Below are positions 1-32,835 of a stretch of DNA of 64,000 nucleotides, piece after piece. The stretch lies in NCBI GenBank assembly GCA_004764695.1, contig SMSO01000031.1, positions 3,076,436 to 3,140,435 on the forward strand, in the 5' to 3' direction. Each line of letters opens with the position of its first letter. Position 1 is the stretch's first letter. The notes beneath the pieces were generated by a model. It was not told the DNA's origin. It saw nothing but the letters and a program-made list of their open reading frames with translations, and ran no database searches. A program made the position numbers and the translations under genes. This DNA comes from Schizochytrium sp. TIO01 (taxonomy: Eukaryota; Protista; Bigyra: Labyrinthulomycetes).

Positions 1-818
1 GTTTTTGCAGTCATGTAATACAACAAGATCGTTCTTTAGGACTTTACAGATGTTTCGACTATCTCTAACTAACAATTAAAATTCAAGTACTCTTACTCTT
101 GAGGTTTAAATCAGTGAAACAGATATTGTCGATCTTGTGTAGAGATCACACCGCTAGGCGTTGAAAGATAGCTATGAGCAATGTAACAATGCGCTGATAT
201 GTTTATGTGCTGCATATTGGCGTTTTTGAGGTGATTGTAACATTCGCAATCATGCGTCATCAGAGAGAGTCGGCATCATCGTTCGTTTCGACTGTCTATG
301 CATGCCGTCAGGTACAAAACTTATCTTCGCATTGGGCCTACTACACCTACATGTATTTAATTGCGAGTTCTGGGCAGAGTCTGTTCCTTCGAACCACTCC
401 CCCTTTTGACTACTACAAAAATTCAGTTCTACCGAAGATTATAAAATCGTGAAGATGCCGACGGGTGTTCATCAGAGAGATATACTGTCCTATCTTCCAT
501 TTATCTGCCTACTTCAATGAAAGTATACTTCACAATATGAGTAAATACAGAGCACGAAGTGAGAGGAAAAAGGAGATCATTTGAACTAAAAAGGTATGAA
601 ATTATTATGTTTGTATGGTGTACGTCTGTCTGTATGCATGCACATGTATTGCCAACTAGCCAGAGCAAGGTGAGACATTCAATGTGAATCGTTTGTGTAA
701 CAAAAGCTTCCCCTGTGAGCATTTTCATCTTCTCCATATTTCATCTCCACCTTTTTATAGAAGATGAGAAATGAACTAGAGTGAGAAAGAGCAGCAGAGG
801 TATGGTACTCTACAAGTC

Positions 819-7867: not shown

Positions 7868-10800
7868 TCAGTTCTGTGAGTTAAACTCGATAGTCTTCGA
7901 GACCCACACCAGAGCCCAAATCCATGGCGCATTCATGGCAAACGACGTAAACAACATAGCCCAACCCCATAGCTCCCATCGGCGGATGGCACTGCGTACA
8001 GCAAGACGAATAGCCTCCTGCATGGTATCACCCTTCTCTGTAACCCTCTCAGGATAAACGATGTCACCACGATCATCTACGCTGATTAGCACACTAAAGT
8101 TGCGCACGACGACGTACCGCCAGAGAACACGAACGAGTGCGCGACTTCCCATGACACGAGAGATATTGAGGATGATGAAGACAGCCATTACAGAAATTCC
8201 TGCAAATAAGGTGGCATGTAACCAATACTCGCTCGAACAGGAAGCGTCAAACATAACCGAGCGCAATAAATCCGTATCCGGGCCTTCTGCCTGGCTTTGA
8301 ATCTGATCCTTGCCACGAATTGATGCGCAGCCTTGGACATTTGTACAGTTGTAAATTGCGCTGGAGGACAGTGGGCCAAACACATAGTCAAAGTTAGGCC
8401 TCGACGTACGGTACTGGAAATTCTCGCCGAGCTGAGTATCGATATAGGCCAGATTCAGACACTCTACAAGAGCAGCATTCTGGCTAACGGTAGAATAAAA
8501 TCGTTTGTTCAACTCATTGAAGCGGTCTACCTGAGCATTATATAAGACTGTGTCATCGAAGGATTGTTTGCTGCACTCTACATCCTTTCCAACGTTGATG
8601 TCGTCGGTGCGAGACTGAGCGAGAGCATCGCCGTCGGAGCAGGCAAACTGGAAAACAGCACTATATGCATTACGATAAAGCATTGTACCGTTTGCTTCCC
8701 CAGCTTCAATACCACGCCAGTCAGTCGATGTGCACGAATCAACATATTCGTAGTAAAGTGGACTGTAAGCATACCAAAAACTGGAAAACACAACCGCTAC
8801 TGCAGTCACAGAAAGTAGCGTGATTACAATAGGGTTGAGGATAAGTGCAGCCATTTTTTGCAACGGGGTTTGTTGAGGGCCCCAGCCTGCGCCATAATCC
8901 GACTTAATACGGGCATCACCCGGTGGTGTGGCCAATCCAGTTAGCGACCAGTACTTCTGGATGATTAAAAACGTTTGAAAGATGCGAAAGATAATGTCAA
9001 AGATCAAAATCAAGTCGCTCATTTCCTCAATGCCACCAGAAACTTGAGCAATAATGCTATCATCATAAGCATAAAAATCCCATTCGGAATGGTCTGTTAA
9101 CTTTGCTAGGACATCAGATGACGAGATATTTGCCTCTATAGTCTCAGAGCTCACATCAGAGCTCGCATCTTCCACAGCATCAGCGCTTGACGATGAACTA
9201 AGGCTGCTCAGACCATCAGAAAAAGATGTCATGAAAGCATCTCCGCTTTGACTGAAAGAATCAAGAGTAGCATTAAGGTCGACATTGACATCAGGAGGCT
9301 GGTAATCGTCCGTCCATCCAGCTTCCCAGCCGACTGAGTTCTGGCGAACTGTATCTTGCTCCGACTCAAGGCTGGCCCCTTCGGAAGACAAACCACCCGT
9401 CATGGAAGCAAACATGCTGTCAAACCCATCTGTAACTGCAGAGGTTCCCATCACCCCCGAGAATGAATAGACAGTTGGGTCAAAGTCAGGTGCAGCAGAG
9501 TCTGATTCATCCGGAACAATTCCAACGCTACCAATTGCATCTGTGATGAGACCAAAATTATTGCGAAGGGTTGTGATGGTCTTATTGTACTCCACCATTT
9601 GTGCCTCAGCAGATGCTTTGTAGCTGATTGCCTGGTTTTGAAGGTTCGTAAAAAAAGAGGTCGAGGACGTCGCCATCGACTCAAGCTTTTTAAAGATAGG
9701 TGTACCACTTGAGCAAGTGCCATCTGCAACCATACATTCCTTCAATTCATCAGTAAATCCCATAACATTATCAAAGCTGGCTGACATGTTGTGAACGCTT
9801 CCTGCCATCTTTTGTTGCGTATCTTGGATATCAAGAGTCTTATTTGCAAAGTACTCATCATCATAGCGACGTCGGCGCTCAAGCTGATAAGCAAGATCTT
9901 CAGCAGCCTTTTCGGATGTATCCCGGTATGCAGATGCGGCATTGAGAGAATTGATGGCAGATGCTTCACCAGCAATAATACCATCCATCAATTTGCATTC
10001 TTCTGCTGTAGATGATGTACGAAAATTAGCGTTACTCAAGTCTATGTCGCCTGCGGTTTCCAGCTGATCAAGTCGAGTTTGAGTTATATTGTAGTATGCC
10101 TCTACAAAAGTGATATTTCCTGCAAGCCAGTCAAGTTGGTTTTGGTTGAAGACTTTCCAGGTGTCCCGACGGATATTTTCCTGACGATAGGTTCGATTAA
10201 AGTCCTCTTCACAAATGTCTGCGACATTACTCACATCTTGTGCGTACTGTCCACGAGCCTCAATCGAGGTGGCATATGCAAATGAATTAATGTCCGTCAC
10301 AGTTTGCAGAGCAGGAACTGGAATAAAATTGCTCACAATCCAACGCGCCACGCCATACGATGTAAGCCACAACCAACAAACTGCAATGAGAGCAAGCCAT
10401 ACGCGTTGTGCAATTTTCTTTTCTGCAAGTTGATGACCTGCTGCCATGCCCGCGCCGCGCACGCCGCCCCGTACCTTTGCAACTGCAAATTCACGTTTGG
10501 TTGCTGTGCTAGGCAATGTGCCTGCTTCAACAGTCTCAAGGTCATCCTCATTCGAGGAAGCTCCATCTTCTTCGAAAGCATACTCTGCAGGCTGATCGGG
10601 ATCACGTTGTAAAATCTTTGGTATAAGCGTGCTCCTTCGTGCCCCACGCGTGAACAGCGTGCTCCTGCGACCTGCAAATGTACCTCTTCGATGGCCTCCC
10701 TTTATGCTGGCTCGGCCAGCCACATAATCATCTTCCGCATCCCCATCTATTGCATCAGAGTTTTCTACGTGTGATGTTCTTCGACCGGCAAGTTGGCTCA

Positions 10801-10987: not shown

Positions 10988-13900
10988 CGCGTTATCCGAC
11001 TCCACCGAGCTGGCGCCGGACTGTGAACTATTTAGCGTATGTCCTCTAATAAGCTCGCGCATTTCTCCTCCCTCCCTCCTCCAGGGCACAGTGCACAATA
11101 GCTGAGTACTTCTGCTTTTCTATATGGCACCAATTAAAATGTCCTAATGGAATCTCTGCGTGCTCTCGTGTATGTACCAATAGAGCGGGAGAAAGAAAAC
11201 AGAAAAGGAAAGGAAAGAAAACAGAAGTGAGGAGAAAAGAATACAGGAACAGGTGTCTTGCGAGCAGCGCGTGCACACAAAATGAAGGAACTTGAACCTG
11301 AAGGCGATTGATTACTACTTACTATCTGCGTGCTCTTTTCTCAGCTTTGAAAATGTGCAAGTTCTCCACGCCTCGGTGTTGTCGAGAAAGCCTTGAAGCA
11401 GGGTAGAATATCTAGACTCGTGGGCAGGGCTCAGGATTTGGGTGGATTGGCTGGGGGAAATGGGCGATAGCGGTTTGGCAGGCTATGTCCCGAATAACCT
11501 AGGTATGAACACGCACACAATTGGATGTATGGACGCTTATCTCTGAAAAGATGCACTCAGAACAAATAGAACAGAACGCTAGAGGTGGACTTCTGTTCCG
11601 TTCTGTTCGTGTTCTTTCTTCTTTTGGTTGCTCCCCTTCGAGCTTCAGGGTTCTTCGAAGCCGTGTGGTCGCTTCGTAGCTCCCGAAGGAGCCTTCGCAA
11701 CAGACACGCTATGAAAGGTTTGATGCCACACGTCCAACTTCTTCAGAGATCCCTCGCGTGGTTCTCTGAACAATCGCTGCTGCAAAAGGTTGATTGGACA
11801 GCTTGTTAGCAAGGAGGACGATGCAGTGATGGAGGATGTCCTGGATTTGATAGCTACAGTCTCAAGTCGCAAGGGCACCTCCCTCAGCGTATCCTGTAAG
11901 TGCCTATACTCTCGACGGGCTCAAGCACATACGCAGTGCCCCTTGGCAGACTTTGCCTGTCGTGGAGGGACTAGCTAGCCGGATTCTTGCAGGTTTTGAA
12001 GGTCTCTCTCGCCGAGGAAGTCTTGCGCAGAGCAATTGAATCAGCCGGCTCGATCGCCTCTTTTAGTCACGCGCAAGCCTAAACAATTTAGAAAATTAAT
12101 AAAAATTGAATAGGCAGTATTACTCTGAGCTTTACAAGAGACGCCCATGAAAGTATAATGGTCCTACCAAGCTAGCATCGGCAGACCTTTTAAAGCGGTC
12201 TCACGCTTGACATTCTCCATGTTACATATATTGAAGAAGCCTTAGTTAAATTTACCACGGTAGCTGCAACTGCTTATTGGTTGAGAAATTCTTTTGCCTT
12301 CCCCTCAGCTTTATAACTTGATGTTGAAGCCTTCTACTCTACATAACGTTTTTAATTGTCGTTATGTTCATCATCACAATGACAATGGCTGTAGTTTAGC
12401 ACCTAGGCGCGTCCCCCAAGGCCATTAAATGTGATTAATTAGTAAGGTGGTGCTGGAAATCAGCACATACCTCAACCTGGCATCTAAGGATCGCATTTGC
12501 TAAAATGACAATTTGTAGATGCTTGGCTTGGTAAGTCTCAACTGTTTCGATGCCAACCAGTAAACAGTGTTAGAAGCTCTCGAAGGTCATGAATCGTTGC
12601 GCAAAACGAAGATAATAGCAATGGTTGACTGTAATGTAGCATAAAGGTTCGCTCAGCACACGGAAAAGGATTATGGATATTTTAAAGGCTTGATTTGGCG
12701 AAATGAATGCCATTCTGTCACCTTGTACACTCATGTTTGCCTATTGGTGGGGCCAATTCACCCATGATGAACAAATCGCTACCAGCTACTTGAAGTTTTA
12801 AGTTACAGCGAGCGAGGGAATGGAGTACCAGAGGAGCTGGGCGTTCGCCTCCATTTTCCAGCTATCCCAGAACCACACAATAGCGCTGGACTCTCATCTT
12901 CGTCTACATCCGTTGTGGAAGTGCCTTTAGCTGCGCACGCCCTCTTTGCCGTGACCGTGACAGAAATTAACTCAAAGAGATGCGAGCGAGGGAACGGCCT
13001 AATATCAAAAGCGGCGTAAGAATTAGAGTACAAACCTCTTGAAGTTGGTGAACTGAATACTATGGTCAACATACGGCAAAAGCCTTATTCACAACCCTTC
13101 GGCATTGTTCTGGCACATTAAGCCCATTTCCTGTCTCGTCGGCATATAGAAGGCGCACGGCAGGGGGGTGACGGGTATCTTGAAGTACATTTTGGAGAGG
13201 AAAGTTGTGCCAAGGATCTCTCCAGCCATTAAGTAAAGCAGATGTGAGAAGCTTCACATGACATTCTCGCCGACTCTGTTTTCACTAGCCAAAATTTCTT
13301 GCCTCTTCTAACCTGCACAACTAAAACTAAGAGGATGAAGCACTCAAGATATCTGGATGTGCGTACCTACTTTCTCTTGAGTTTCTCTCACCGCTAGCTG
13401 GATAAGATGAGACTTCAATGCCTGAGAGTCTGCGTGAGCATGTTCCTCGCAATGCTCTGTCTGGAAGCCCCCTACGCACATGCACACGCGCTGAGTAAGG
13501 CCATGCCAGAGGCGCCCTTCTCTAGCTGTGCATTGCAAGAGTGATCTTTTGTTCCTAGATGAAAGAGCTACTCTCACAACACCACTGATGAGTTCTCCTC
13601 ACAAAATCTCCAGTGATGCTGAGAGTAAACGGCGCCCATCTCCTATACGCGTGCCCCGCAGCCATTTTAAAGAGGAAATGTGGCCATCATGTCCCAGAAA
13701 GTGTACCGATAAAGTTTTATACTTTCTTTATGTGTACGGCCCCTCTTGAACTTGAAGCATGAAAGAAGATGTCAGAAGGTTTAGTTGAGACTTTGTGGCG
13801 TTCGCTTTCTGGGCTTTGAGCAAGGGCTACGCTTGGCTGCATTCTAAGGGAGCTTGTGGGCGACTGAGGGATAAGAGCCCTTCTTTGCTACGAGTGCTAG

Positions 13901-14870
13901 CGACCATCTCCGTGTACTCGATCAGCTCGCGTGGACATAGTCTAGGTCGCGGCTCTTTCGGCCAGCACTATAGAATAGCTATGTTAAATATTAAGAATGA
14001 AATAGTCACTTTATTTTCTATTTTGAAAAAAGAAAAACACCAAAGAATAAGTATTAGCCGTGACCTATGCATAGCAAGTAGTAAAGAGGCACGTGCATAT
14101 AATTTCATTATCTTAAAAATGATAAAGCAGGTAGTATCCAAATTGTGCACATGATACTCAGAGACCATCATAGAAAGTACCATATGGCGCTGTCTCTGAA
14201 CAAACGAGATGGCCTTCATAGTCATTCCCATGCGCATATCGCAGCACGAGAAGCAATCGAACCACACGCTGTTGTAATGGGTCAGCATTAGGGATCTTTG
14301 GTGCTGCAAAGAGTGCGAAAGAGGGAGTGCAAAAAAGGTAATGTAGTTATTCCGTGTCTTGTAATTTCACGCAAAGTGATATTTTTTTTCACTCGCTCAC
14401 TCGAAAGGAAATAATAGAAATTATCAAGTTAGTGAGCTGCTTAACAATGGAGCAATACAATAATCACACTGCGTGTGCATGACTTATTTGATTGATATAA
14501 CATTTGATGACTTTGCAAACTAGCAATCCTGCTTCTCCACGCAGACGGGTCGTAGCGACGACCCTACCGTGAGGCTTTTGCGCTCGCTGCCTGCGAGCTC
14601 TGCAGGGCTGGCTGACAGGCTAGCTTGCCGACCAACGAGGTATTTGGCTGGTACAGACACCGGACCCAAAGTGGTCCTGACTAAGGTTCGGAGTGAGACA
14701 ACGGGGCCAAAGACTGTTAATAGCGGCCCTCACGACCAAGGGCGTCTCCATTGGTACGACTTCATATCTTTCGACGCGATTACTGACCGTGCTTCCGAAG
14801 AAACAAGTTGATAAGGTAAATCAGCAGAATGTCGCGCATAAGATCGTGGAAAGAGACTTTACAGAGGACT

Positions 14871-17688
14871 ATGGCGCCACCATCTGGACCAGGGCTTGAG
14901 TCATCAACGCCACGGCTATTTTCTCCAAGGCCTCCGTCTGCAGCGCATCCAGATGACTTTCTCGCCACAATTCAGGAAGCAGAGGTCTCTGAAAGCAGAC
15001 CAAATATTTTCCGACGTATGGGGGGTAAGGTTGGGAAACAAATTCGTAAGAAGCATGCATGTGAACGCGCTTTCATGTGCGCCTTAGCGGTGAGTTTATT
15101 GTGGCTCACCTCTCTCGTTGTTGCAAAGGAAGTTACTCATTTGTTCATTCCCGTGCCAACTATGCAAAGTGTAGATGATTCAGTAACCCTCATGACAGAC
15201 AATACTAAAGCTCAGCGCACAGCATATCAAGACTGTGCAACACGTGTTGCAGAGGTTTGTGAGGCAGATTTCAATGCAGATACAACTGCAGAGTCATCTC
15301 GCCTTGCTGCAGTACAAAGCGCAATTGAAGAACACATTGCTTCTATTAAATCTGAAGTTGTATACTGCAGTCAAGCGTACCTGAATGCAACAAACATTTT
15401 CAATGCATACTCGAATTCCAACAGCTATGTATCTTCTACTGGCGCTATTTGTAGCCAATATTCATTCTCTGAATTCCTCTCGAGCGAGACAAACACAGCT
15501 AATGCTGTGCAGGACCTAGAATCTTACAAGGGTGCTTCCGATGCACAAGTGGAAGATCTCAATAATCAGATCGGAGCGCGTGCAGCCTATGACCTGGAGT
15601 TCATGAACAATAAAACAAACGGACTGTTTGCTGAGGTGGGTGCAAGCTTGATGGAGAATTTGACTTCTTCGGATGAATTTTATGCTGCTGTAGAAACCGA
15701 ATACGCTAGCTTTATGGCATGTGTTTCACCAACTTCGAGTTACGTAAAGTCTGATGGCACGACTGCCGTCTGTGGCAGTAGTACCATATTTTATAAAGCA
15801 AACCAGCAAATGGACCAGATGCAAAATACTTACGAATCTCTGCTTGATGAGGCTCGAGCCTACAGAACTGAAATTGAAGCAAAGATGACACGCTACGAGG
15901 AACTTCGCAAACGCGTGGAAAACATCTACCACACTCTTGTTGAAAGTGGGTTTCCGGGTAGCTGGGTTTACCTTTCAGGACTATCGCTCGGGTTTTCAGA
16001 ACACTTGTCAAGCCTTCTTGGTTCTCAATTTGATTCTCTGACAAATCTCGTGGAGGGCCCAGCAGAAATCTATGCAGATATGCAAACCAAATCTGCATTG
16101 TTTCTTGCAAGTGTGACTGGTGAAGGTGGCTCGGTTGATTCGTCAAATGCGCAGTTCGAGGGAAATGTTACCGCGCTTATGATGGAGATCTTTGATGACT
16201 ATAATCCACCGTATGTAAACGAAACCCTATTGGAAGAGCAACAACGCGCCTCGTCGTCTGTTGTTGGTGAAGTGACGCATGAACTTTCCTCTGTGACCTC
16301 TGAGGAAAACGGAACCTCCTCTGTGGAAGAGTTTGTGGATTCCTCTGCTGTCAACATCTCACAAGCAAGCGCTCAACTTCTTGATAAAGCAGACCCTCGC
16401 ACATGGGCTGACTATTACTCGTATCCTGAAGACGTTTTTGCACAGTTCGTTGCTGGTATGGTCAGTGTAAATGATCTTGCATTAGCGTTTGATTATGCTT
16501 ATCGTGTGATTCATTCGCTTATGCTTATTCGCAAATATTGGAACATCTCTGCTATCAACACTCCGCCAGCGGATGTGCGTACCAAGAAGGGCATCGCAGC
16601 GGGTACCTTTGTGGCGCAACAGAACCCGGCGCAGAAGGTCGCGAGCATACTGACCAACCCTATTTTCAACATTTTTCTTGTTCTTTTGTTTCTCGGCCTT
16701 TTTGGTGCGGCTTTCTATGGTACCTACAGCCCCATCTACAATGAGTACACCAACAACTGCGTTGACAAGTGCTATCAGGAGATCCAGAACACCATCGTAG
16801 ATGTCAATGGCGAGAAACGGTACAATACAACTGCCAATGGGACAATGCTTTATCGCAACGCTTTTGCATTAGCGCAGCAATATGCATTCAGCGATGGTGA
16901 TCATATTGCTAATACACAAGTGGATTCATTAGGTGTGACAATGGAACTATCTTGCCGTGATGAGACAGTCGACTCAATTTCTATTCGTCTGAATCAAGAT
17001 GATCGATATGACTATTACACTACGCGCGCAATTGATCTAACTCCCAAGTACGAATACATTCGCGAATGCATCGACACAGCAGGTATAGAGTCTGCAACCT
17101 CATATACGTTTGCTGATGTTATCAAGCAAGATCTTGATCTATGCGTTAAGACCTATGAAACACTCGAGGAGTATCTCACAACCCTGAATCTCCAAGTGAC
17201 TTCTTTACAACGCATCTACAATTGTGATAGCATTGGAGCCTGCAACTTTGACTGCTCTGGTCCCAACGAGGCTGTCCTGCGTGGTGTAACCTTTGAAACT
17301 TCGTGTACCTCGGAATGGTATGCGCATGCACAGCTTCTAACCTTTTTTTGTGCCCTTTTTGGTTTTATTACTATCAACTTGGCACGCGTGATTTTTCCTG
17401 AACGGAATTGTGAAAGTTATGTGGCGACACCTCAGTTCACATAAATTTGCAATGATTGCGTCTTGCCGTGAAGATGGAGCTATCATTTACCCTGAGGAGG
17501 TCACGGAGGAGGGGGAATCATTTCGAAAGGTCATCATCAAACAGCTTCGTGTGGCAATCCGTGAGTTTGAGCGCCGTGGCTGCCTTATTACTCTTTTTGG
17601 AGTTTCATTAATCTTTCCTTGGTTTGCAATTCTCTTCACGCTTAGTGAACACCTTGCCTTTGATTCCGATAAAATCTGTGAGCTTTAA
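14871..17688 (+). CDS. Uncharacterised five-TM glycoprotein, subtype B copy 1 (B1), with a +1 frameshift in the T run at 17392-17396
   Basis: ORF 14829-17444 joined to ORF 17410-17688 aligns end to end with B2. Removing one T from ATTTTTCCTG restores RVIFLNGIVKVMWRH (B2: RIVFLDGIVKVFWRH). Start ATG 14871 (MAPPSGP) or 14829. Confidence 0.88.
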
Positions 17689-18742
17689 ATGGGACACGTG
17701 GCACAATGCATGCTTTTGACTAATCTTTCGGCCTACAGATGAACAGAGATGGAAAGAGCTTCTGTTTCGGGTTCTCATTTCGCCACCCTCCAATTTTCAT
17801 TCAAAACTGTTTATCTTTTTTTCGTTCTGTTGTAATTTTGAATTATTATATATTTTTATCGCTATTAAATTCCCAATTTGATTGGAAAGTCTACAACAAC
17901 TGATGCATCACATGGCATATCCTATTTTGATGTAATCTAGTGAGATTTGAAGGTTTCAAGATGCTTTGAATGCGTTCAAATCAGAGTCAAACGTGAGTTG
18001 GACGAGAAACGGGGTCTACCCTCCTTAGGTGTGGGTTGTACACTATATGCACACTCGGGTCACTCACGACTCATGTATATTTCAATTTTGAAAATATTTT
18101 TATTTTTTTTAAATATGATAAATTTCCTCTTCTTAGATATTATTAGTATTTTTTTAAAAGTATTTTTTCAATTAATTAAAAATTCATGTCAGGAGGAAAA
18201 AAAGAAAGAAAAAAACCTATATATGACATAAATTATACAAAACACATCACTGCATGGAAGGGTTGACAATTGCAAGACTGCCATGATGGAAAGCTTAATC
18301 CTGTTTGCGACAAAGCTTGAGTAGAGCAGATAATGACTAGGAGATACCATGAGTATACTATGATAAGCAGAAGTGTTCATCAGGTTCTTGAAACAGAACT
18401 CGAAGTTGATAAATTTAATCTTGTTTTATTCTTTATTTCCCTGAAACAGATGTAAAATGCTTACGCGTCCCTGCATAAACAGTAAGATATGCCGATACTC
18501 AAAGGGATGGCAGACCTAAAAAGGAGAATCAAGAAAGAAAGGCAATGTGGTAACGAACAATATCATTTAATATGATGATTATTATTTAAAAAACAAAACA
18601 AATACACAAAGAAAAAACGAAATAAGCAACAAAAGAAAAGGGGCAACAAACGGAGGCGAGTAAGAGTGATAGAAAGTTCGATTCCTCGGATACGTAGCTT
18701 CCCAAGCTCACCCAAGAAGTTCGCACGCTATGAGTATAAGGA

Positions 18743-21700
18743 TTATGAAGATGTGTACTGAATAGTCTTGTGGAACCAAGTAAGAGCCCAAATCCAAGGC
18801 ACGTTCATGAGGATGGCAATTGCTAGCAACATTTGACCTTCACGCTCCCATTTCTTGATAGCATCCCTAACAGCAATGCGGATAGCCTCCTGCATAGTAT
18901 CTCCTTTCTCAGTCACACGTTCAGGGTAGATAATATCTCCCCTATCAGTGACGCTAATGTATACGCTGAAGTTACGAACAACAACGCAACGCCATAGAAC
19001 ACGAACAAGCGCACGGCTTCCAATAACACGTGAGATGTTAATGATAATGTACACTCCGATCACGAAGAGCCCGGCAAACAGGTTTGAATGGAACCAATAT
19101 TCAGTCTGGCACGAAGCATCAAAGATTACAGATCGCAATAGTTCCTCATCGGGGCCTTCTGCCTGACTTTGACTTGTGTCCTTGCCGCGAATTGATGCAC
19201 AACCAGATACACTTGTGCAATTATAAATTGCCGTTTCTTCTAGATCGCCAAAATCATAGTAAAAGTGTTTGTCACTAGTTCGTGTGACAAAATCGTACGC
19301 GTTGCTAGTGGCAGCATCAACTGCAGCAAGGTCAATGCACTCGACAAGTGCAGCGTTTTGCACAGTAATATCGGTGTAGTCGGTCATGAGAGTGTCATAT
19401 CGATCTACTTGAGCATTGTATAGAGTTGTATCGTCGAAACTTTGCTTGCTACAGTACGTGTCACGACCAACATTAATCTCGTTGGTGCGACTCGAAGCAA
19501 GAGAGTCTCCATTTGATGCAGCATACTGAAAAGCTACTGAATAAATGTTCCTGTAAAGCATGGTACCACTTGTCACATTATCCTCAACAGCGACATAATC
19601 ATTCTGTACACAAGACTCGACGTATTCATAGTAAAGGCCACTATAAGTATACCAAAAGGCCCAAAGAATGACACCTGCTGCTGTGAGACATAATACAGTG
19701 AGGACAACTGGGTTGAGTAAAATTGCAGCAAGCTTTTGGTACGCTGTTTTCTTTGGTCCCCAGCCTTCTCCATAGTCAGAACCAATACGGGCATCGCCTG
19801 GGGGTGTTGCAAGGCCTGTTAGTGACCAGTACTTGTGAATCAGCATGAAGGTATAAATGACACGAAAGAGAGTATCAAAGATCAGAATAAGCTCGTCCAT
19901 TGTGTTGAAACCACTTTGAACGTTGTTCATGATCGAGCTTGAGTAAGAATAAAAATCCCAGCTTGTATGGTCTGTCAAGGACACAAGAACATCACTGGCA
20001 GTAGTATTGATACTCAAGACAGCAGAATCGACTGTCGCTGACAAGGTAGAGTTGTCATATGTGCTAGATGCAGTTGTAGTAAGAGATGACAATTCATCAC
20101 TGAATGAATCCAAAAAACTATCTGAAAGAGCAGTGAGGTTGTCGAGAGTGCCATTAATGTCCAAGTCAGAATCACCAGGATCACAGTCACTATCCCAATC
20201 ATCGCCCCAGCTTGTTGCTGCAGTACGCATTTGCTCTTGGTAAGCTTCAAAAACGTCACTGGCATTGGCAAAGTTGCTCAATAAACCGCTGTAGTAAGAA
20301 GAAAACCCGCTCGTGACTTCAGATGTAGATGGTACACTATCAATAGAATAGCTCGATGTGTCGAAGTCTGGTACATCGGCATCATCCTCACTTGGGATCG
20401 AACTCGTACCAAATGCTTCCTGAAAAGTAGAGTAATACTTATTAACAGACTCAATTGTCTTCTTATACTCCGCCATTTGCTCAACTGCATCATCGTAGTA
20501 TGTCTCAGCGGCACTCTTTAGACCATCAAAGTACTCCGTACATGTATCAGCCATGTCTGATAGTTTATCAAAGATGCTTGTTGCTGTCGAGCATGTTCCA
20601 TTGTAAGTGATACATTCCTTGAAGTCATTTGCGTAGCTTTTAACATTGTTGAAAACCTTGGTCATGTTCGGAATGGCTGCTGCCATTTTGTCTTTGACAT
20701 CTGTCAGATCTTGTGTCTTATTTGCCAAGTACTCTGCGTCATAAGCTTGCCGTGCATAAATCTGAGATGCAAGGTCCTGAGCGGCATAGGTTGATGTTGA
20801 GACATATCCATTAGCAGCTGTGAGGGCTGCGACAACACTCGCGTTACCAGCTACAATGCCATCAATGAGTTTGCATTCAGAAGCATTTGAGGTCGTACGG
20901 TAACCCCCACCCGATTCTAAATTGATGGTGCCATCCGTGACTAGAGCATCTAGCCAGATTTGTGTTTCGTTATAGACGTCATTGACGTAGGTGATATTGG
21001 TCACCAGGTAGCTTAGGATGTTGTAGTTGTATTCTTTGAGAGCTAGCGTTCGATAGAATTCAGTTCTGTTGGAGGAGTCGAGGTCGGACTCACATTCATC
21101 TGCGACAAGAGCAACATCATTGTAGTATTCATCACGAGTGCTCACTGTCGTATCGTACGCAAAAACATCTACCTCGTAAACCTCTGTCAGCTCCGGGGTT
21201 GGGATGAATGCCAAAACAATTGATCGAGCAACGGCATAAGAAGTTAGCCAAAGAAGGCAAACTGCGATCATAGCAAGCCAGAGGCGCTGGGCAATGCGCT
21301 TGTCTGCTACTTTGTGTGCAGTAGCCATGCCGGCACCTTTCACGCCGCCCTTCACCTTGGCGAGAACAAACGTATTGGTCGTTTTGGTCACTGTGCTGCC
21401 GGCTTCAACAGTTTCCAAATCATCATCATCTGAGGATGCACCATCCTCCTCGAAAGCGTACTCGGGAGGCCGGTCTGGGTCCTTGTGAGGGAGGATATTT
21501 GCTAGTGAAGGTCTACCTCTGGCATCGAGAGACCTTCTGAAGATGCCAGTAAGCGATGGTCTTGACCGCAGGGACCAGACAGTTTTGCGAGGAGGCGGGT
21601 ATGCAGTTGGAGTCTCACCAGGAAGTCCGTGATCATGTGTAGCCGTTGCCAATGCCATTGGTATGGAGTCGCTGTCCTCATCATGGGTGTCTCCATTTGC

Positions 21701-21877: not shown

Positions 21878-24800
21878 TCTCCCTCTTTGTTAATTTTCTT
21901 TATGGCGATCCCACGCCACCTCGAATTTCAAAGAGACAGGTTGGACGTCGAAGCGAGAGAGCTTAGCAGATGTACGCACTGTCCTCACCAAAGAAGGCGA
22001 CGTGAGCAATCTTCACCGAGATAGCAATTCGCGCGTTTTGTATATATGATATATATCAATAAGGGTCTTGTCGCTGGTTTTCTATTTTTGCACGCGCTCG
22101 TTGCCAACGAGTAGATCTTAGGTCCAGACCTCACTTCAGGCCAGCGATACAGAAGCAGCACGCTGCTCTTAAGGGGTAGGGGAGTGAGGAGATCGTCAGC
22201 CTTCTCGGATGCGGCCCCTTGCCGCTCAGCTAAGCGCCGACCGCCTTCTTCGTGTTGTTGTTGTTTCCAAAGGGATCTGCAAGTGCCGATCAGTTCGTGC
22301 ACTCTTCTTGCTCATAAAGACTTTCTCTCTCCTCTTAGAGAATCACTATTGTTACAAAAAGAACTATAAATAGAAAATAAAAAATAAAAGTCATAGGGAC
22401 CTACCCTTTCTAGTAATATTGTTTGCACAAAACTTGTGTTTCTTTTCTCTTTCTCAGGAAATAAGAATATTCTGTAGTACCATTTATATGCTGCGGAAGA
22501 ATAAAACAAAGGCCAATCACTTACCTACCACTATGTTTATATATTGTTCATGATCGCGAGGGAGTGAATCAGCTGTCACACCATATAATAAGGAAAGCCT
22601 TGTTGGTCGACCACCAAAGCTTTTCTGATTCAAGTTGTCTCCTAATTTGTAGCAGTAGGGCAGTGAAAAGTCTTGAATATCTCCTTCAACGTGGACTCTA
22701 TGAGGACAGTGAACAAGAACAAAAAGGAGGAAAGAAAAGGGAGAAATTTTCCCTTCACGAATGTTGATAACTCGTTTAAGGGGTGAGTCTCTGTGCTGGC
22801 AGGGCACACTGAGACTGGGTAGCAAGCAAAAACAAGACCTCGCAGCCAGTATAGTGATAGAATTCAAATTATCAAAAACTATCTACGTCTAGCAGATTAC
22901 AAAGAAAGAAAGAAAGAAAGAAACACTACTATTAATTTTACAAAAGCTTTATTTTTAGTAATTTCTTCGTCCTTCTTTTCTTTAGAAAGAAGGGTTTGCA
23001 GATGGTAGTAAGGCAGTACATAGGTATTAATTTTTCATTTTTCATTTCAATTTTATTGTTGTTATATAGATAAACAAATTCCTAAAAAGGATTTATAAGT
23101 ATAGACAACTTCCTCGAGGCGGCTCAAAGTACCCAACTCAGACGATAAGAAGGAGAACAAGAAATAGTATCGAGTATCGAGAGCGACCGAAATGTAGCGA
23201 TTGCCTTCTTCTTTGGCCACGCGGCTTCGTCTACAAAAGTATGTGATCTGATCTTCGTTTCTGGCTTTCGGTATTTAATTGCCTCACGCTGTACTTTCTT
23301 TCAAGTCACTTTTCCCCATTGAAAGTAAAAGTAAAAGAATAAGTTCAAAGAAGTAGTAGTAATATTCCAAGAAGAACTTTTAAGCGTTAAAAATAAAACA
23401 ATTAAGAAAAATGCAAAACGAGCGCAGCTCCCTGGAACGTGAATCGCCTTTCTCTGCCGGATCGTGAAGCGGTTGCCCTGCTTCTTCTCAAGGAAGGGAG
23501 TCCACTAGGAACCGCCTCGCGCCTATTGGCGTGCGCTCCTCTAATCCTCCCTGCGTGGGACGTGGGAAAGCATGAAAGCCACCCGAAGGATTTCTTGTAA
23601 CTTCTCACAATACTTAGCACCTGCCCACCCTAAACCATAGGACCGGATGTTAATGTGCGCTTCGCTTTTATTTACTTATTTATTTATTTAAATCCTAAAA
23701 TAACAACTCCTTTCGTAAAAAATAAAAAAAATAAAAAAAATCCTTTTCGAGCGAGTTAAACTTAGTTTTCTCACTCTCGCTTAGGATTTTGTGTGAAACA
23801 GCAGTCACCAAGAAAGCTTTCCAGTAAGTGAATCAAAGCGCAGGGCCAGCGCGAGCGTGGGTCCTGATCTGCACTTTTCATTCCCAGGTTAAGTCTGCAA
23901 CACGCATCATATAAATGTCATACTGCTGCCTATGATGAGAGTTGTTAAAGCTGGTCGATTTCACCTTTACTTCTCCATCATTTTATGATGCCATTATTTG
24001 CGAGGTAGCGAGGAGCACCGAGGTTTTGTGTAAAACCAACCCCAAGTGGTAGAACAGGGCAGCCTTGAGGCGACCGCGCTCCCGTTCTGAGCTGGCCGCA
24101 CCACGATCGGCGATCTTTTACCGGCGCCGCTACAGATTATGCGAGGTACCCGCTGTCTGCAAGTTCGAGCTCGTGGCAGGCGTCTCTGCTGGCTCGGACT
24201 CCAGCGCGCTCCTCGCCATATTCACCTCCCGTTCAACTTTGTAGGTACGTGCCTACCTTCTTACTACCCCTTATGATGTGATTTTCTCCTGTCTTTCTAA
24301 ATTTATTGGCCTCTGATTTAGTTTAAAAGGTTTGTGTGTATTTCTTGTTTAACGCTAGTTAAAATAAACTTTTAAACTAAAATAATTAAAGACAAAATTA
24401 AAGAAATATACATAATATAGGCCTCTTCAATTCCCCTCAAAGAATATGGAGGCCCGCACCAGCAACAACGACGAGCGAATGACGCTCGAGCGCTATCAGC
24501 TTGGTTGAGCAGGCCCCGGCCTCTCTCGGCTCTAGGCAGGTACTTGCGACGAAGCACGCACCACAAGGCTTCAGGACAGAGACCGATCGCGAGCTGCAGG
24601 TGCTCACGAGTAAGTCAGGCGCCCGAACTTTGGTCAGCGGCAGATCAGCCAGTGATCGTCTCCTTATGTTCCGCGCGTGCCTGCAGATGTCTGAACTGCC
24701 CCCGATCTCAATCATTTGGCGCTTTTTTTTTTTTTTTTCTTTTTCTTTTTTTTAATTTAATTAATTAAAACTTAGAATATCATGATGATTACGTTGTTAA

Positions 24801-27800
24801 AAAAACAAAATTGTTAAAAAGAAAAGGCAAGCTCAAACTTAATGTTGAATGACTTGTTTAATTAGGAAGCTGGGTACCAACCTTTTATTGGTTTACGTAA
24901 ATTTAGAGATGCAAGACTTAAGGTTGATTTTTCTAGCAAGTTTGTGTGGAGGCGTTTATCACTCAAGATACTAATGCGTCGCAAGATGGGCGTGGCTCTT
25001 CTTTTATGGCACAACCGAAATACTTTTCACAATGCGTGCAGCTGCGATTTAGAATTGCTCAAAGAAGCGAAAAGTAGCCTTCGAGTAAGTTCGGGAAAGC
25101 CCATGAAATGTTGCAATGCTTTGGGCTTGGATAACGCAAACTGTGAAACATCAAATTTGGGGACTTGAGGGATAGTATTTTCGTAGACACCAAATAAAAA
25201 ACACCACGATGCAAAGGAGCTCCAGGCTAGAATCACTCAGAGTGGATGCCAAATGAGCGTGTGCTTCTTCAGGCGCCTCCTTGAGTTGCTAGATATTGTT
25301 TCCTTTTCAAGGTGGCTCCAGTTTTACTACATCTAGTAAAGAAAGTAGTACTCTATTAGTTAGGCCATATAGGTGTATACATATTTGATTTGTCTTACTA
25401 AGTGAAAAAATTAAATTTTTAATTTTAAAGGCTGTGATTATCCCCTTCACCTTTGTCTGGCTCCCAATTTACATCGGCCGAGTCAAGCTGCTCAGCGAGG
25501 GATTCGAGCGTAGCACAGCGTTGGGCGGTGTATACATACCCTACTCGAAGACTCCCTGGTCGCAGCTCTATCTTATAAGGAGCCAAGTCCGTACGAGTTC
25601 GAAGTTCTCTTAGCCTGGGTACCTCAAACGGCATTCCACGCTTCCTTTGTGAAAATTCATGAGTGACTAATCTAAACCTTCTTCAATTTGCATCAGAGCT
25701 TGAATGCCAGTGGCTACAGCCGCGGTGCAGTAGGTACGGGGCAAAAGTAGGACGTTCTTTCGGCTCTTCTGCTCCCGTGCATGCTGCTCAGCTCAGCTTA
25801 TGCACACGAATTTCAAGTTTGGCTATCCGAACGATTTTTTTGGTAGCTTTTAGTGTCATTAGGCGGGAACTTCGAGTTGTGGCGTGATGTCTTCTTCACA
25901 GTTCTACAGTAGCAGTGGCCGAGGCTGCTGGAGCTGGGTAGCATGGAGAGCCTTTAAGCGGGGATCGGCTGTACGCGCGCGACCTCGCGCAGCTCGACCC
26001 CACATGATACCACGAAGCATCTTGAATTTGAGGAAATTGGGCATAATTTTTAAGATGGGATACTATCATCGTTGTAACTATTACTACTACCACCTTCGTG
26101 AAAAATTGAAAAGGAGAAAAGAAGTAGGTAATTTTTTCTTCTTTAAACAAGGTAGATTAGCTGCCTCTACCTACCGAATGGATAGTCTATTTTTTCTATC
26201 ATTTTAAAAACGTTTTATTTGTTTAATTGGTTGTTTATGATATCTCTTTTCAAAGAAAAGCGCTGCTTTGAAAATACTTTTCATCAAAACATACATACGT
26301 AGACGCAATATATAGGTATTACAGTAAGACTCACATCACATTCATGGTAATTTGGGGAGACTGCTAATCTCTGGAAATAGAAAGGGGATCCGCAAATATA
26401 CAAGATTGCTACTGAATGATCTCGCGGTCACGTGCAACGGTGCACACCACTTGCTATAATAAGATAATATGATCTGAGATTGATCACTTCGAAAGGTGTA
26501 AAACAAAGAAGATCGATCACGACACTCAGAGACTTCGCAGTTCATCCAGCTGGGAGACTTAATCGATATCCTAAAGCCATGTTCAACGAATAGTTAATGC
26601 AGCGGCAGGGAGGCTGGGGCTGCTGACTAAGAACATGGCTCGAATTTATACAACTGCAGCTGACCGGTGTTAAACTGGGATGATGGATCGTGCGAGCAGC
26701 TGTCAGAAGCCTTGCACACAACCACACAACCACCATGTTTACCGAGCGGCCGATTGCATCTTTTGACTATGGCCTGCTCAGAACTCCGTCGGCCTGCTTC
26801 AAGGGGAACAAGTCAGCAGCACCGGAGATGAAACGACGAGGTAATAAATTCGTTTGCAACGCTTCCACCCTTCACAGGGATCTGCACACCATCATTAGCA
26901 TCGCCATTAAATCATCTTCGTTCTTGAACATCATAGGTTGCTTGATTGCTTGATTGCTTGAACAATTAGTTTGCAATGATGATCATCAAGATTTCGTGAT
27001 GCGCTCATCCTTTTAGTCACTCAAGCCACCGTGGTGTAGAAATCCCGGCTCCGGTGCTCCTAGGCCGGGGCCAGCAAACTTGAATGTAGCTTTTAGGGCT
27101 GCTATGATAATGTAAACGTTTAATTGACAGCTAGATGCCTTCCTTGGCGCTGAGCAGCGGCCCTCTTCGTGCCTGAATTGTTCACGAACAAGCCGAGACA
27201 AACAGTGAATACCTGGTGATTTTAAAACATAACAAAAGTCATCATAATCTTTTTTCTTCATCGTAATTGCTATCGTTGGAGCCCGTCAGCATCTCGTGTA
27301 CGTACTTTTCAGCTACTCGTAAAGCCTTGAGATGACTTGAACATAATCAGAGGTCTTGTTTGCAATGAGAGTACAATCCCACGAAATCCTGACCGCTGGC
27401 GCGATTGCATGGTGGGCACAGCTAGCTGCCTGAAGTTATTGAGATGGTATTTACCAATAGCACCATTGCCGTTCGTTCGCAAATCACGTAAACAATAACG
27501 CTGCGCTGCTATTCTTAGTGGGTCGCGCATGTAGAGCTGGCAGCTCTATTCAAGCTCCAACATGATCGCTTAAAAGTCGCCAGTGGATAGGAATCTGCAT
27601 AATCTAAGGAATACTTTGTGCTACCTTCTGATTCACAACTTTCGCAACTTGAGACTTAAACCAGCACAGATAGTCTATTCATTGGGGTCCGGCCGGCTTG
27701 AGACCATCCTCCAGCAGGCCGGATCGCTGTTCTTCCGGCCTGCTCCAGAGATTTGGCTAAAGTGGACCTTGAAACTCTCTCATTATTCTGTTTTTTGACG

Positions 27801-28980
27801 CCAGAGCTCGCAAGGCTAGCTTATCCAGTTTACCTTGGGGTTTTCGGGAAGTGGATGGCCCCAGCTGGCAGCTTGATAAAGTAAACCTGGCGTGGAAGTC
27901 CATTCAACTCATCGACTTTCATTGCATGAATCAACAAACAAGCTCACAAAGCCGTCACCTTCAAGTCCTTTCATTTCCTCAAAGTCCTTCTACTTCTGCT
28001 ACCACCTAATCGACTTCCTTGTTCTTCCTCTTTGTCACTTGGAACCGCATCATACATGGTAGGCGGTGTAGTAGGCGTCCAATAGGCCTGCTTACCTGCA
28101 GGTGCTATGTCCTTTTGCTATACAGGCCACTAGCAGTAGTGCGAGTGGTACTGTAAATGCTACGTACACGCTATTCTAAACCATTGTCAATTTGCTAGCA
28201 GTGAGCGAGCGCGCGTGCACACCTTGCACTCTTCTTTTTTGTCGATCTCCAAGAAAGAAAGAAAGCAGCCTTCGGGTTAACCTCAGAACTCGCAACAGGT
28301 GGATCAGAGACTGTTGTGGAATAGACTTGGCCAGAGACTCGCGCTCATGTCCTCAGCTGCAAGAGCAGCCTCACGCACTGAGCGCTAATTTGGCTGTGTC
28401 GAACAGAAGAGCCCGCCATGATGACATTTCCCACGTTTTATTATTTAAGGCAAGTAGCTTTTTCATCTTTTATCTTTCAACTTTCATTTCCCTTTTGAAG
28501 GGTAGAATCATGCATTCATTCCCCAACCTGTCGTCGCATAGAACTAAAGGACAAACCGTAATGATGGCTCTCCAGACAGCCTGCTTAACCTAAGAAATCC
28601 CTCAAGCTCCTGTCCTTGCTGTAACTTTCTCCGACCCGCAAGTCTGAACCTGCCCCCTCTATAAATTCTCTCGATCGCAGTAAACAATTATAATGATGAT
28701 AACAAGGAAGAAATGGAATTCATTTGCCTAAAGAAAAGAAGAAAATAAAAGTTTCTTTTACCGCCAGTGGAATAGCCCAAGAGGCGAGGTAAATCGCACC
28801 AGCTTATGAAGGCAAATCAATTATGCGTCATCGCTCTCTTATACTTATACTGAGGGTAGTCCGCGGGGTACGTAGCGCACGCCGCTTTATGCGTTGGCCT
28901 ATTTCTAAAGATATTCTATTGCACGCTGTCTCCCTCGCTCGGATTGAACTCTGAAAAACATCATCATCTAATTAATAAAA

Positions 28981-29136
<156 letters not shown>

Positions 29137-29952
29137 CTTTTTTATTTCATGCCATTGAGCCGGCCTCTCCAAATTTAACACAGGCCTTCCCTCCTTTATA
29201 TTCGCTTTTGTCCATCATTGCCCGTGTGCAGGGTTTCACTCACCCTTCTATTGCACAGTCTGTGCAATCCAAACAAAACTGTTGAAATTAGTAGTTGCAA
29301 CATACGTGTTCAACAAAGTTCGTTGGCTTCAAGAAGACTGACTGTTTTGCAACTAACTATTTTATGTAGAGATATTTTAAAATTAAAAACTTATTTTGAA
29401 ATAAAATACTGTTTCGAAAACAAATTAAAAATATTATGAATATGATTGAGTGCTTTTCGTTTCCTCTTTGTGTAAATCAGGGAGGCCTCAATTCGCACGC
29501 ACGCTCACTCGCTCGCTGCATGCAAGTCTGTATTCAAGAGGCAGTGAGAACCTCAATCCAATCGCCAGCAAAGCCCCAGCGGCAGTTCTCTCCAAGAAGA
29601 TTGAGGGCGGTGCTTGTGGTCACTAGCGAGGAGCGCCTCCTCTGCCCGTGGCCACTCGGCGATTGCAAACACCACTGCTCAGAAGCTATTTTTGCTATTT
29701 GTGGAGTTTTCACGCAAGAATCCCGTTCGTCTCGTGGCGAGCAAGGGCATCACTACCGTAGCCTGAGTCTTGCTACGAAATCTTGTGGAGAAGTAAACAT
29801 TGACAAGTTCATGCTCATTACAGCTCCGTGAACTTCAAGCTTAAAATCAAAACAGCACGTGCAGCCCATTTATTAGAAGCCTGAGCGAGGCAGTGGTATA
29901 AGGTGCACTGCATAAACTTTGGCTTGGTGTGCCTTCTCTGTAATCCTGCACA

Positions 29953-32835
29953 ATGCCGACGTTTACTCCAAGACCACCATCAGGGCCGATGCCCTCGTAT
30001 AGCGCTGATAAAGAAGAGCCTATCGTTCACAAAAGCAGCCTCAATGATCGGTATGAGGCACGTCCTCCTTCAACTGCGTACCCAGAGTTTGGATTAAATG
30101 GCATCGATGTAAATGCTGAGGAGGATGTTGACCCGGAAAGGAAACTAGGTGCTGTTAAGCGCATGCGCAAAAAGGTTTACAGACAAATTCGAAAAAAACA
30201 TGCATGTGAGCGTGCTTGTATGTGCGCACTTGCCGTAAGTCTTCTGTGGATCACATCTCTCGTTGTTTGTCAAGAGGTTACCCATGCATTTATCTCTACT
30301 CCTACACAAACAAGCGTAGTAGAGTCCTACGAACGTTTGTCTTCTGTGACCCTCTCTCAAAGATCAGCCTACAAAACGTGTGCCACCGAGGCTGCTACTG
30401 ATTGCCGCACGGCCTATACGCGTGATACTGACGCGGAAGATGAGCGAGTCCTCACTGTTCAGAACACTCTGGCAGCTCGTCTGCAAACCATCAAAGCAGA
30501 AGTTCTTGCTTGCTCTATCGCGTTCTTAAATGCAACTGACTGGCTTAATGAGGCTGTTTCTAATGGTAACATTCAAACAATAACCATCAATTCAACCGAC
30601 GGAATCTGTGGCACGACCGACTTTACAACTTTTCTAAATTCGTCTTCGATTTCGGCCCAGTCTATCTCTGACCTCCAAGACTATCAGAACTCCGCGGATG
30701 CAACAATTGATTCACTAAACAGTGCTCTCAACGAGCGCGACAGCTACATGAGTTCTTATTTGTCCAACACAACAAGCGGAACTTTCACTGAAATTACGGA
30801 CGAGCTGCTAGCCAACCTTACAACAGCCGATGATGTGTATGACAAAGTAGATACTTACTATGCATCATTCATGGCGTGTATGTCGCTTACGTCTTCCTAT
30901 ACAACAGACAGTGGAACTACAGTTTCATGTGGTGACTCCATTTTTGCAGCAGCCGTGAGCCAGTTTGAGGAATATGAGAATCAGTATGAATCCCTTCTTG
31001 ACGAGGCCAAAGCATTTCGTACAGAGATTGAAACAAAAATGGCCAACTACGAAGCCCTTTACGAAAAGGTGACATCTGCTTTATCAATTTCAGGTTTGAG
31101 TGGGCTCTACGTTAGTGGCATTAGCCTGGACTTTGATGATGTTTTGGAACAGTACATGACATCCGCTTACAGCTCTCTTAGCAACCTTCTTGATGGCCCA
31201 GAGGAAATTTACTCGGATTTGCTAACTCAAGCAAACGATTTCATGACAAATATCGAATCTGCTGTGCAATCAGTAACCGACGGCAACGATGAAGTAGAGA
31301 GTAATGCCACTTACCTCACGACATACTTTTTTGATGACTATGATCCTCCTGCGATTGATGAGACTCTTTACGATGAGCAAGTCGACTCCTCTTCAAGTGT
31401 AGTCAGTTCTGTGACAGACTCTCTCGACTCCGTCACAACCGAGACGAATGGTACATCAAGCATTGAAGATTACGTGAGTTCAACAGCTCTAAATATATCT
31501 GAAGAAGCTGCAAATCTGCTTGACAAGGCAACACCTCGAACTTGGGAAAGCTTCTTTACGTACCCATCATCAGTTTTCAACCAGTTTTCGAGTGGTATAA
31601 CGAGCGTTAGTAGCCTGGCCCTGGCATTCGATTACGCATATCGTGTCATTCGCTCCCTAATGCTCATCAAAAAGTACTGGAATATTTCAGCGATCAATAC
31701 ACCACCTGCCGATGTGAGAACTAAGGCAGGCATTGAGGCTGGAGTATTCGTAGCTAAGACCAACATGGTACAAAAGGCAGGTAAAATTTTGACCCATCCT
31801 GGTCTTCATATTTTCCTTATCCTTCTTTGGCTTGCACTCTTTTCGGCCGCCTTTTATTCTGCGTATTCTCCAATTTATGAAGAATACGTGAATGGTTGTG
31901 TGGACAAGTGCTACTACCAAATCACAAACACCATCACCAACACTGACGGTACCTATCGTTACAATGCTACACTCGAAGGAACTATGCTCTACCGCAATGC
32001 CTTTGCTATTGCCGATCAATATGCATTCGCTAATGGTGACTATGTTGCTTCCACTGAAGTCGACAGTCTTGGTGTAGAAATGGAGCTTGCTTGCAGTGAT
32101 GCTGTTACAGAGACCATTCAGGTCCAACTCGAGCAGGATGACCAGTTCGAATACTATAATGATCGTGCACTAGATTACATTGACAGCTTTGAGTATTTGC
32201 GTCAATGCGTCGACACAGAAGCATTGAATACGAATTACCCTCAGTCTTATGACTTTGACCCACTAGTGTACGACGCTAGCCTCGCTGAATGTGTGCGCAG
32301 CTTTGATGATCTCGATACTTATCTTGATTCAATTACATTGGACGTCACTAGTAAAGATCGCAATTTCGACTGTGATAATATCGATACCTGTGACTTTGGC
32401 TGCTCTGGCCCAAGTGAAGCGATTCTGCGAGGAGTGAGCTTTGATTCTGCCTGCACTATTGAGTGGTACGGTCATGCTGAATTACTTACTGTGCTATGCG
32501 CAATTTTCGGATATATTACGATTAATATTGCTCGCATTGTGTTTCTAGATGGCATCGTCAAGGTATTTTGGCGTCACTTTAGTGCACATTACTTTGCAAT
32601 CATTGCTTCTTGCCGAGAAGACGGTGCCATTATTTATCCTGAGGAGGTTACTGAGGAGGGCAAATCTTTTCGCCACGTTATCGTAATGCAACTTCGTATT
32701 GCCATTCGTGCTTTTGAACGCCGAGGTTGTTTGTTAACCTTGTTTGGTATTGCTCTAATTATTCCATGGTTTGCAATTCTCATTTCACTCAATCGCCACC
32801 TGGCCTTTGATTCTGATAAAATTTGCAATCTCTAA
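29953..32835 (+). CDS. Uncharacterised five-TM glycoprotein, subtype B copy 2 (B2)
   Basis: 960-aa intronless ORF, clear paralogue of B1 (QIRKKHACERA, LAFDYAYRVI, KYWNISAINTPPADVRTK, HLAFDSDKIC). Confidence 0.92.
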   Translation: MPTFTPRPPSGPMPSYSADKEEPIVHKSSLNDRYEARPPSTAYPEFGLNGIDVNAEEDVDPERKLGAVKRMRKKVYRQIRKKHACERACMCALAVSLLWITSLVVCQEVTHAFISTPTQTSVVESYERLSSVTLSQRSAYKTCATEAATDCRTAYTRDTDAEDERVLTVQNTLAARLQTIKAEVLACSIAFLNATDWLNEAVSNGNIQTITINSTDGICGTTDFTTFLNSSSISAQSISDLQDYQNSADATIDSLNSALNERDSYMSSYLSNTTSGTFTEITDELLANLTTADDVYDKVDTYYASFMACMSLTSSYTTDSGTTVSCGDSIFAAAVSQFEEYENQYESLLDEAKAFRTEIETKMANYEALYEKVTSALSISGLSGLYVSGISLDFDDVLEQYMTSAYSSLSNLLDGPEEIYSDLLTQANDFMTNIESAVQSVTDGNDEVESNATYLTTYFFDDYDPPAIDETLYDEQVDSSSSVVSSVTDSLDSVTTETNGTSSIEDYVSSTALNISEEAANLLDKATPRTWESFFTYPSSVFNQFSSGITSVSSLALAFDYAYRVIRSLMLIKKYWNISAINTPPADVRTKAGIEAGVFVAKTNMVQKAGKILTHPGLHIFLILLWLALFSAAFYSAYSPIYEEYVNGCVDKCYYQITNTITNTDGTYRYNATLEGTMLYRNAFAIADQYAFANGDYVASTEVDSLGVEMELACSDAVTETIQVQLEQDDQFEYYNDRALDYIDSFEYLRQCVDTEALNTNYPQSYDFDPLVYDASLAECVRSFDDLDTYLDSITLDVTSKDRNFDCDNIDTCDFGCSGPSEAILRGVSFDSACTIEWYGHAELLTVLCAIFGYITINIARIVFLDGIVKVFWRHFSAHYFAIIASCREDGAIIYPEEVTEEGKSFRHVIVMQLRIAIRAFERRGCLLTLFGIALIIPWFAILISLNRHLAFDSDKICNL

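Follow-up and report, generated by a model that had tools for sequence, protein, structure and literature searches.

The 64,000-nucleotide stretch of the labyrinthulomycete Schizochytrium sp. TIO01 analysed here (NCBI GenBank assembly GCA_004764695.1, contig SMSO01000031.1, positions 3,076,436 to 3,140,435 of the forward strand; hereafter the window) carries four long intronless genes, designated A1, B1, A2 and B2. They are best explained, with a probability of about 0.7, as real and intact members of an undescribed and widespread family of five-pass (pentaspan) membrane glycoproteins that forms an ancient, divergently arranged pair of two gene types, A and B, and whose function we infer. A search of the window for open reading frames (ORFs) recovered the four genes in the order <-A1 B1-> <-A2 B2->. 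The genes, their parts and the spacers between them are listed below, with lengths in amino acids (aa) and membrane segments abbreviated as TM (transmembrane).

7868-11098, minus strand: gene A1; the listed ORF of 1076 aa opens with TTG, and the probable ATG start, 12 codons further in at about 11062, gives a protein of 1064 aa as in P0002.
11099-14828: A1-B1 spacer of 3.7 kb; unique in the genome, with no ORF above 119 aa and no Pfam or Rfam match.
14829-17444, plus strand: main reading-frame piece of B1 (871 aa), ended early by one extra base at 17397.
17398-17688, plus strand: C-terminal piece of B1 in the next frame (96 codons and a stop), with the IIYPEEVTEEG loop and TM5; 78% identical to B2.
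14468-17822, plus strand: colinear, joint-free contig of the transcriptome-sized public run X3, probably the unspliced B1 mRNA of ~3.35 kb.
18743-21877, minus strand: gene A2 (1044 aa), with TM segments at residues 199-217, 663-681, 719-737, 934-952 and 1017-1035.
19892-21226, minus strand: outer loop 1 of A2 (residues 218-662), with long helices, 12 N-X-S/T sites, conserved cysteines and a Ser/Thr-rich linker.
19079-19666, minus strand: outer loop 2 of A2 (residues 738-933), with the GTMLYRN motif, a 75-residue helix and six conserved cysteines.
21878-29952: A2-B2 spacer of 8.1 kb; unique except for a repeat of ~45 bases, with no ORF above 133 aa and no Pfam or Rfam match.
29953-32835, plus strand: gene B2, an ORF of 960 aa; the ATG chosen by the gene caller, 12 codons in, gives 948 aa (P0007).

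The coordinates and strands bear out the original prediction, made from the letters of the window, of four intronless genes in two head-to-head pairs. Its statement that A1 and A2, as well as B1 and B2, are close paralogues is upheld by BLASTP identities of 52% over 1038 aa and 50% over 867 aa, respectively. The homology that it proposed between the two types also holds, as A2 and B2 are 27% identical over 950 aa, which is their whole length (E-value 8e-81, BLASTP), and each of the five motifs it had quoted occurs in one copy in each of A1, B1, A2 and B2. As the B1 frame is shifted in the window, P0009, a 938-aa protein from a near-identical public assembly, served as the stand-in for intact B1 in the comparisons. 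Further family copies were not found in the window by tblastn. A whole-genome search of the window's assembly (64 Mb in 37 contigs) with the family profile identified these four genes and one divergent fifth paralogue on another contig (G000:C24:4415316-4417691; L008:3035-5857). The fifth paralogue, of 940 aa, has the same five-pass layout and a long branch in the tree, and is devoid of the GTMLYRN and IxYPExVTExG motifs.

Both hydropathy and the structure model yield five membrane segments, arranged in a 1+2+2 pattern, in keeping with the five segments originally predicted. On the flanks proposed to be cytosolic, A2 has 15 and B2 has 17 lysine and arginine residues, whereas either protein has only 2 on the opposite side, and therefore the N-terminus is placed inside and the C-terminus outside. 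The two outer loops of A2, of ~445 and ~195 aa, contain 14 of its 17 N-X-S/T sites in addition to conserved cysteines, and the A and B proteins are predicted from these sites to be glycosylated; the inner loops span ~37 and ~64 aa. The N-terminal tails are disordered and proline-rich, with lengths of ~190 aa in A and ~85 aa in B, and a proline motif of the PPxPSGPxPS type is conserved at the N-terminus of the thraustochytrid proteins. Two distant members (P0059 and P0074) possess a WW domain at the N-terminal position, which in P0059 occupies residues 17-43, ahead of TM1, and one more member possesses a ubiquitin-like domain (alignment A4). The hallmarks of the family, namely the 1+2+2 core, the FD..R..KYW..TPP.D.R motif, the loop cysteines, E...H before TM4 and N..R within TM4, are present in all four window proteins and are retained across 47-107 members.

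The outer cysteines provide a further indication of the fold. Cys254 of loop 1 and Cys906 of loop 2 (A2 numbering; columns 398 and 1175 of alignment A2) occur in every B protein and in the basal A proteins and are replaced, both together, in the four crown A proteins; their joint loss suggests that a disulfide between loop 1 and loop 2 has been lost in the latter. The number of conserved outer cysteines is even in A and in B, which gives no hint of an intermolecular disulfide, and for the same reason an A-B link through an unpaired outer cysteine was discarded. Internal duplication, with TM1-loop 1-TM2 compared with TM3-loop 2-TM4, was not detected (hhalign probability 0.5%).

A model of full-length A2 based on an alignment of 15 sequences was poor, with a predicted local distance difference test score (pLDDT) of 64.5, and a model without the N-terminal tail, based on 107 family members, reached a pLDDT of 81.5 with a predicted template modelling score (pTM) of 0.58. 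The latter is all-helical, with a helix of 85 residues running from TM1, one of 75 residues from GTMLYRN and others of 40-56 residues, and a disordered Ser/Thr-rich linker stands before TM2. The cytosolic loops, which carry the TPPxDxR and IxYPExVTExG motifs, are the most conserved regions between the duplicates (identities of 79% for A1/A2 and 71% for B1/B2 in inner loop IC1, and of 83% and 81%, respectively, in IC2), and the lowest conservation is that of distal loop 1 (39% for A1/A2 and 44% for B1/B2). Across 47-107 divergent members, Asp668 and Arg672 in TM2, Glu926 and His930 before TM4, and Asn947 and Arg950 in TM4 are invariant or nearly so, as are six or more of the loop cysteines.

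Phylogenetic analysis was carried out on the thraustochytrid members, and A and B were found to be reciprocally monophyletic with support of 100/100, in agreement with the earlier view of two anciently split lineages. A1 groups with Hondaea 024352 (support 95/96) and B2 with Hondaea 024482 (92/97), and the orthologue pairings of A2 with 024332 and of B1 with 024342 are not rejected by the tree tests. The original prediction expected a phylogeny of (A1,A2),(B1,B2); the approximately unbiased (AU) test rejects a forced window-only A1+A2 clade (p-AU 0.004) as well as a forced window-only B1+B2 clade (p-AU 0.045). These groupings with Hondaea orthologues and the rejection of the window-only clades indicate that the tandem duplication of the A/B unit preceded the split between this genus and Hondaea. 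Thus, the later duplication of the whole cassette that had been proposed stands in so far as the unit was duplicated after A and B had separated, and has to be moved back to a time older than this species.

The pairing itself appears to be older still. Basal thraustochytrid sources have one A and one B each, and on the metagenome contig L010 two genes lie head-to-head with a gap of 123 bp, one of the B clade at 506-3316 on the minus strand and one of the A clade from 3440 on the plus strand, an arrangement repeated on contig L012. For three additional sources, identical longest-contig figures (45,545; 9,494; 17,902) are given for A and for B, and the two are probably on one contig there. Taken together, the head-to-head pairs on L010 and L012 and the matching contig figures of the three sources imply that the divergent pairing dates back as far as the two clades themselves. 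In Hondaea, where the gene order is taken from locus tags, three of the genes run consecutively as A, B, A.

The family extends beyond labyrinthulomycetes. A profile built from 15 A and B proteins and run against 1.84 billion representative sequences retrieved 857 family representatives at E<=1e-3, of which 597 reach E<=1e-10 and 199 reach E<=1e-30; the majority are full length. Among the few named members, the closest relatives belong to the thraustochytrid Hondaea fermentalgiana, which has four such genes, and others come from Rhizochromulina marina, Tribonema minus, Pteridomonas, Thalassiosira, Mallomonas annulata and two Rhodelphis species. Besides Rhodelphis, the range thus takes in diatoms, dictyochophytes, a xanthophyte and a synurophyte. 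The family thus spans stramenopiles, and extends beyond them if the Rhodelphis transcripts are that organism's own. The sequences concerned, P0045 and P0049, are full-length members from two species of this group of red-algal relatives, and they carry the family beyond stramenopiles unless they derive from prey or contaminant transcripts. Another record, P0024 (KAH9255067.1), is filed under the chytrid fungus Batrachochytrium salamandrivorans BASA81 and groups with environmental sequences in labyrinthulomycete-type clades; it may be a contaminant or mislabelled.

The integrity of B1 required separate consideration. An extra base at 17397, within the run tttttcc, shifts the frame so that the ORF stops at 17444, and the coding sequence continues in the next frame at 17398-17685, the last 96 codons. 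P0009 is identical to window B1 at 841 of 842 positions over the common part and then runs uninterrupted into the C-terminal part. Contigs of four public runs, from four studies, were compared with window positions 12500-18499, and none of the four has the base at 17397; the frameshift thus either arose in assembly or is specific to the sequenced strain. The former is probable, and the annotated protein is truncated as a result. The frameshift is also the one feature that would favour regarding one or more of the copies as a decaying pseudogene and the cluster as a relic of duplication. This reading is scarcely credible, since the extra base is missing from every other run, the downstream codons are open and have retained 78% identity to B2, every invariant residue is kept in all copies, and Hondaea orthologues of both duplicates persist.

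Two of the four public runs, X3 and X15, have contig sets of transcriptome size (26 and 36 million letters). In X3 a single contig with a depth of 39 follows B1 colinearly and without a joint over 14468-17822, and in X15 contigs cover B1 at 14637-17779, with the flanks empty or thinly covered in both runs; both probably represent the unspliced B1 mRNA. Thin X3 contigs (depth 2-4) were also observed at 12500-13959, within the A1-B1 spacer that has neither a long ORF nor a known RNA family, and may reflect low-level non-coding transcription or carry-over of DNA. The four Hondaea identifiers are not listed in the supplements of the zoospore and vegetative proteomes of Aurantiochytrium (PMC12221091). 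A candidate from the same source, A47522, was rejected as an A/B gene, being apparently of ~325 aa only.

Searches for a named family gave no match, in line with the earlier failure to recognise one. Pfam assigned no family to the four window proteins even at an E-value of 1e-3. Prominin (PF05478) gave no match at E<=1 in the four window proteins and none in 47 diverse members, and no Prominin match was obtained anywhere in the genome in a six-frame search. Tweety (PF04906) and DC-STAMP (PF07782) likewise had no Pfam match in the window proteins or the 47 members. A search of the PDB with the family profile returned designed or coiled helical bundles only, with no chain of the Tweety homologues (TTYH) at E<=10. 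Foldseek found nothing in the PDB at E<=0.001 with either model, and among the Foldseek and VIA-align matches of both models (855-1044 residues, searched as whole cores) there were no TTYH or prominin chains. Resemblances to long antiparallel hairpins, such as the coiled coils of chemoreceptors, SMC proteins and SNARE-type proteins, correspond to background scores of long helices, leave the membrane core uncovered and imply no relationship. The family is undescribed, with no named family, Pfam model or solved relative to which it can be assigned and no characterised member.

Comparison with prominins is nevertheless instructive. Prominins are defined by five TM segments in a 2+2+1 pattern, an N-terminus outside and two inner loops of <25 aa, and occur across eukaryotes, stramenopiles included (PMC11405016). 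The A and B proteins resemble them in being pentaspan, with two large, mostly helical outer loops that are predicted to be glycosylated and are continuous with the TM helices. They differ in their 1+2+2 pattern with the N-terminus in and the C-terminus out (N out and C in for prominin), in their longer and highly conserved inner loops and in their shorter loop 2. One topological likeness remains, namely that TM1-TM4 of A and B, with their loops, run in the manner of prominin TM2-TM5. Since oomycetes possess ordinary prominins (bioRxiv 10.64898/2026.09.11.750887), the A/B family is not merely the stramenopile form of prominin. TTYH proteins, which are dimeric membrane proteins formerly taken for channels, are similar in having five TM segments and an extracellular helical bundle formed by extensions of the TM helices, and dissimilar in their small ectodomains of ~120 aa per loop. 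A separate gene of this genome encodes a Tweety-like protein of 475 aa (G000:C13:3986101-3989679; L014:724-2148), which matches most of the Pfam Tweety profile with a score slightly below the cut-off (28 bits, E-value 1.1e-6); the A/B family profile has no similarity to it (hhalign probability 3.7%).

On the basis of these features, A and B would be located in the plasma membrane or endomembranes, facing the lumen or the cell exterior, and may serve as a structural or organising surface module with a rigid helical stalk stapled by disulfides. The conserved function would be carried by the membrane core and the cytosolic loops, and these loops, together with the N-terminal tail, might link the module with partners in trafficking or at the cell cortex. 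As the best analogy, an organising role similar to that of prominin or Tweety, with no detectable relatedness, can be suggested only tentatively. The two proteins may also co-assemble. Co-assembly or co-regulation is plausible because both types have been retained side by side since ancient times, and we would put its chances somewhat short of even. Much more doubtful is the extended proposal that A and B form an obligate heterodimer founding a new pentaspan superfamily, a topologically shifted and very remote relative of prominin and Tweety; the complex would shape or anchor membrane protrusions characteristic of these protists (the ectoplasmic net, surface structures of the flagellum or shed vesicles, for example) and be coupled to the cell cortex through the cytosolic loops.

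Other interpretations of the family differ in what they make of the same features. One holds that it is a very remote branch of prominin/Tweety with a shifted topology, bending or organising membranes for protrusions or vesicle release, in which TM1-TM4 would correspond to prominin TM2-TM5, prominin TM1 having been lost and a new C-terminal TM gained. The common string of elements (in to out, a large helical glycosylated loop, out to in, a small inner loop, in to out, a large loop, out to in; PMC11405016) speaks for it. Searches of a protein atlas with a language model also listed the same Prominin- and Tweety-bearing clusters for A2 and B2, but at scores of 0.76-0.84, below the level at which they count, and this descent appears unlikely. 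A second interpretation draws on the large cysteine-rich outer loops and the multi-pass character that A and B have in common with DC-STAMP and Prm1, and on a distal ectodomain that evolves fast (39-44% identity, against ~80% for the inner loops), and sees in them proteins of fusion or adhesion acting at a particular life stage, e.g. in gamete or zoospore contact. Prm1 forms disulfide-linked dimers, and the even outer-cysteine counts of A and B offer no hint of an unpaired outer cysteine. With no DC-STAMP Pfam match in any member tested and with B1 present in transcriptome-sized runs from ordinary culture studies, a weak sign against stage restriction, a fusion or adhesion role is improbable.

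The invariant charged and polar residues of TM2 and TM4 and of the segment before TM4, along with the strong conservation of the TM and inner-loop regions, can also be read as the signature of an ion channel or transporter, in which homo- or hetero-oligomers of the five-pass cores would line a pathway with these side chains. The charged residues may, however, simply form structural salt bridges; five TM segments with a huge helical ectodomain are atypical of transporters, and no similarity to any channel or transporter family or fold was found, so that such a function is likewise improbable. An undescribed pentaspan family with an ancient A/B pair remains the preferred explanation.

Several observations weigh against this explanation or limit its reach. 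The location, glycosylation, disulfides, assembly and function of the proteins are all matters of inference. A complex of A2 residues 640-1044 with B2 residues 525-960 was predicted with a score of 0.00, with the partner poorly folded and the alignments unused, which gives no verdict and counts as evidence neither way. The spacers of 3.7 kb and 8.1 kb in this genome do not constitute a compact shared promoter, and the fifth paralogue stands alone with no family member adjoining it. In Hondaea, the order of the locus tags puts the B2 counterpart ~13 genes away from its A partner, and tight linkage of A and B is therefore not obligatory; the linkage in relatives on which the original prediction was to be judged is thus seen in the head-to-head pairs of the metagenome contigs and broken for this Hondaea gene. 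The RNA nature of X3 and X15 is a guess from the size of the contig sets and the pattern of coverage, and the transcription data concern B1 alone among the four genes.

The A1-B1 and A2-B2 spacers have no similarity to each other. A stretch of ~45 bases at window positions 24718-24778 (positions 2841-2901 of the A2-B2 spacer) recurs at at least 6 other sites in the genome with 89-94% identity, which would fit either a small dispersed repeat or a motif of low complexity. B2 is followed downstream by an ORF of 1203 aa (33244-36855, minus strand) with a small-GTPase-like segment at its start.

Thraustochytrids and other stramenopiles are important ecologically and industrially, and their surface biology is largely uncharted. 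A large, conserved and so far nameless family of predicted membrane glycoproteins, kept by thraustochytrids as a pair of two gene types, is described here, and the probable assembly error that truncates B1 is flagged in this genome. With this family it can also be tested whether the helical-stalk pentaspan design known from prominin and Tweety has evolved repeatedly. As Aurantiochytrium can be transformed, the A and B genes would provide a genetically tractable entry into how thraustochytrid cells build or sense their surface.
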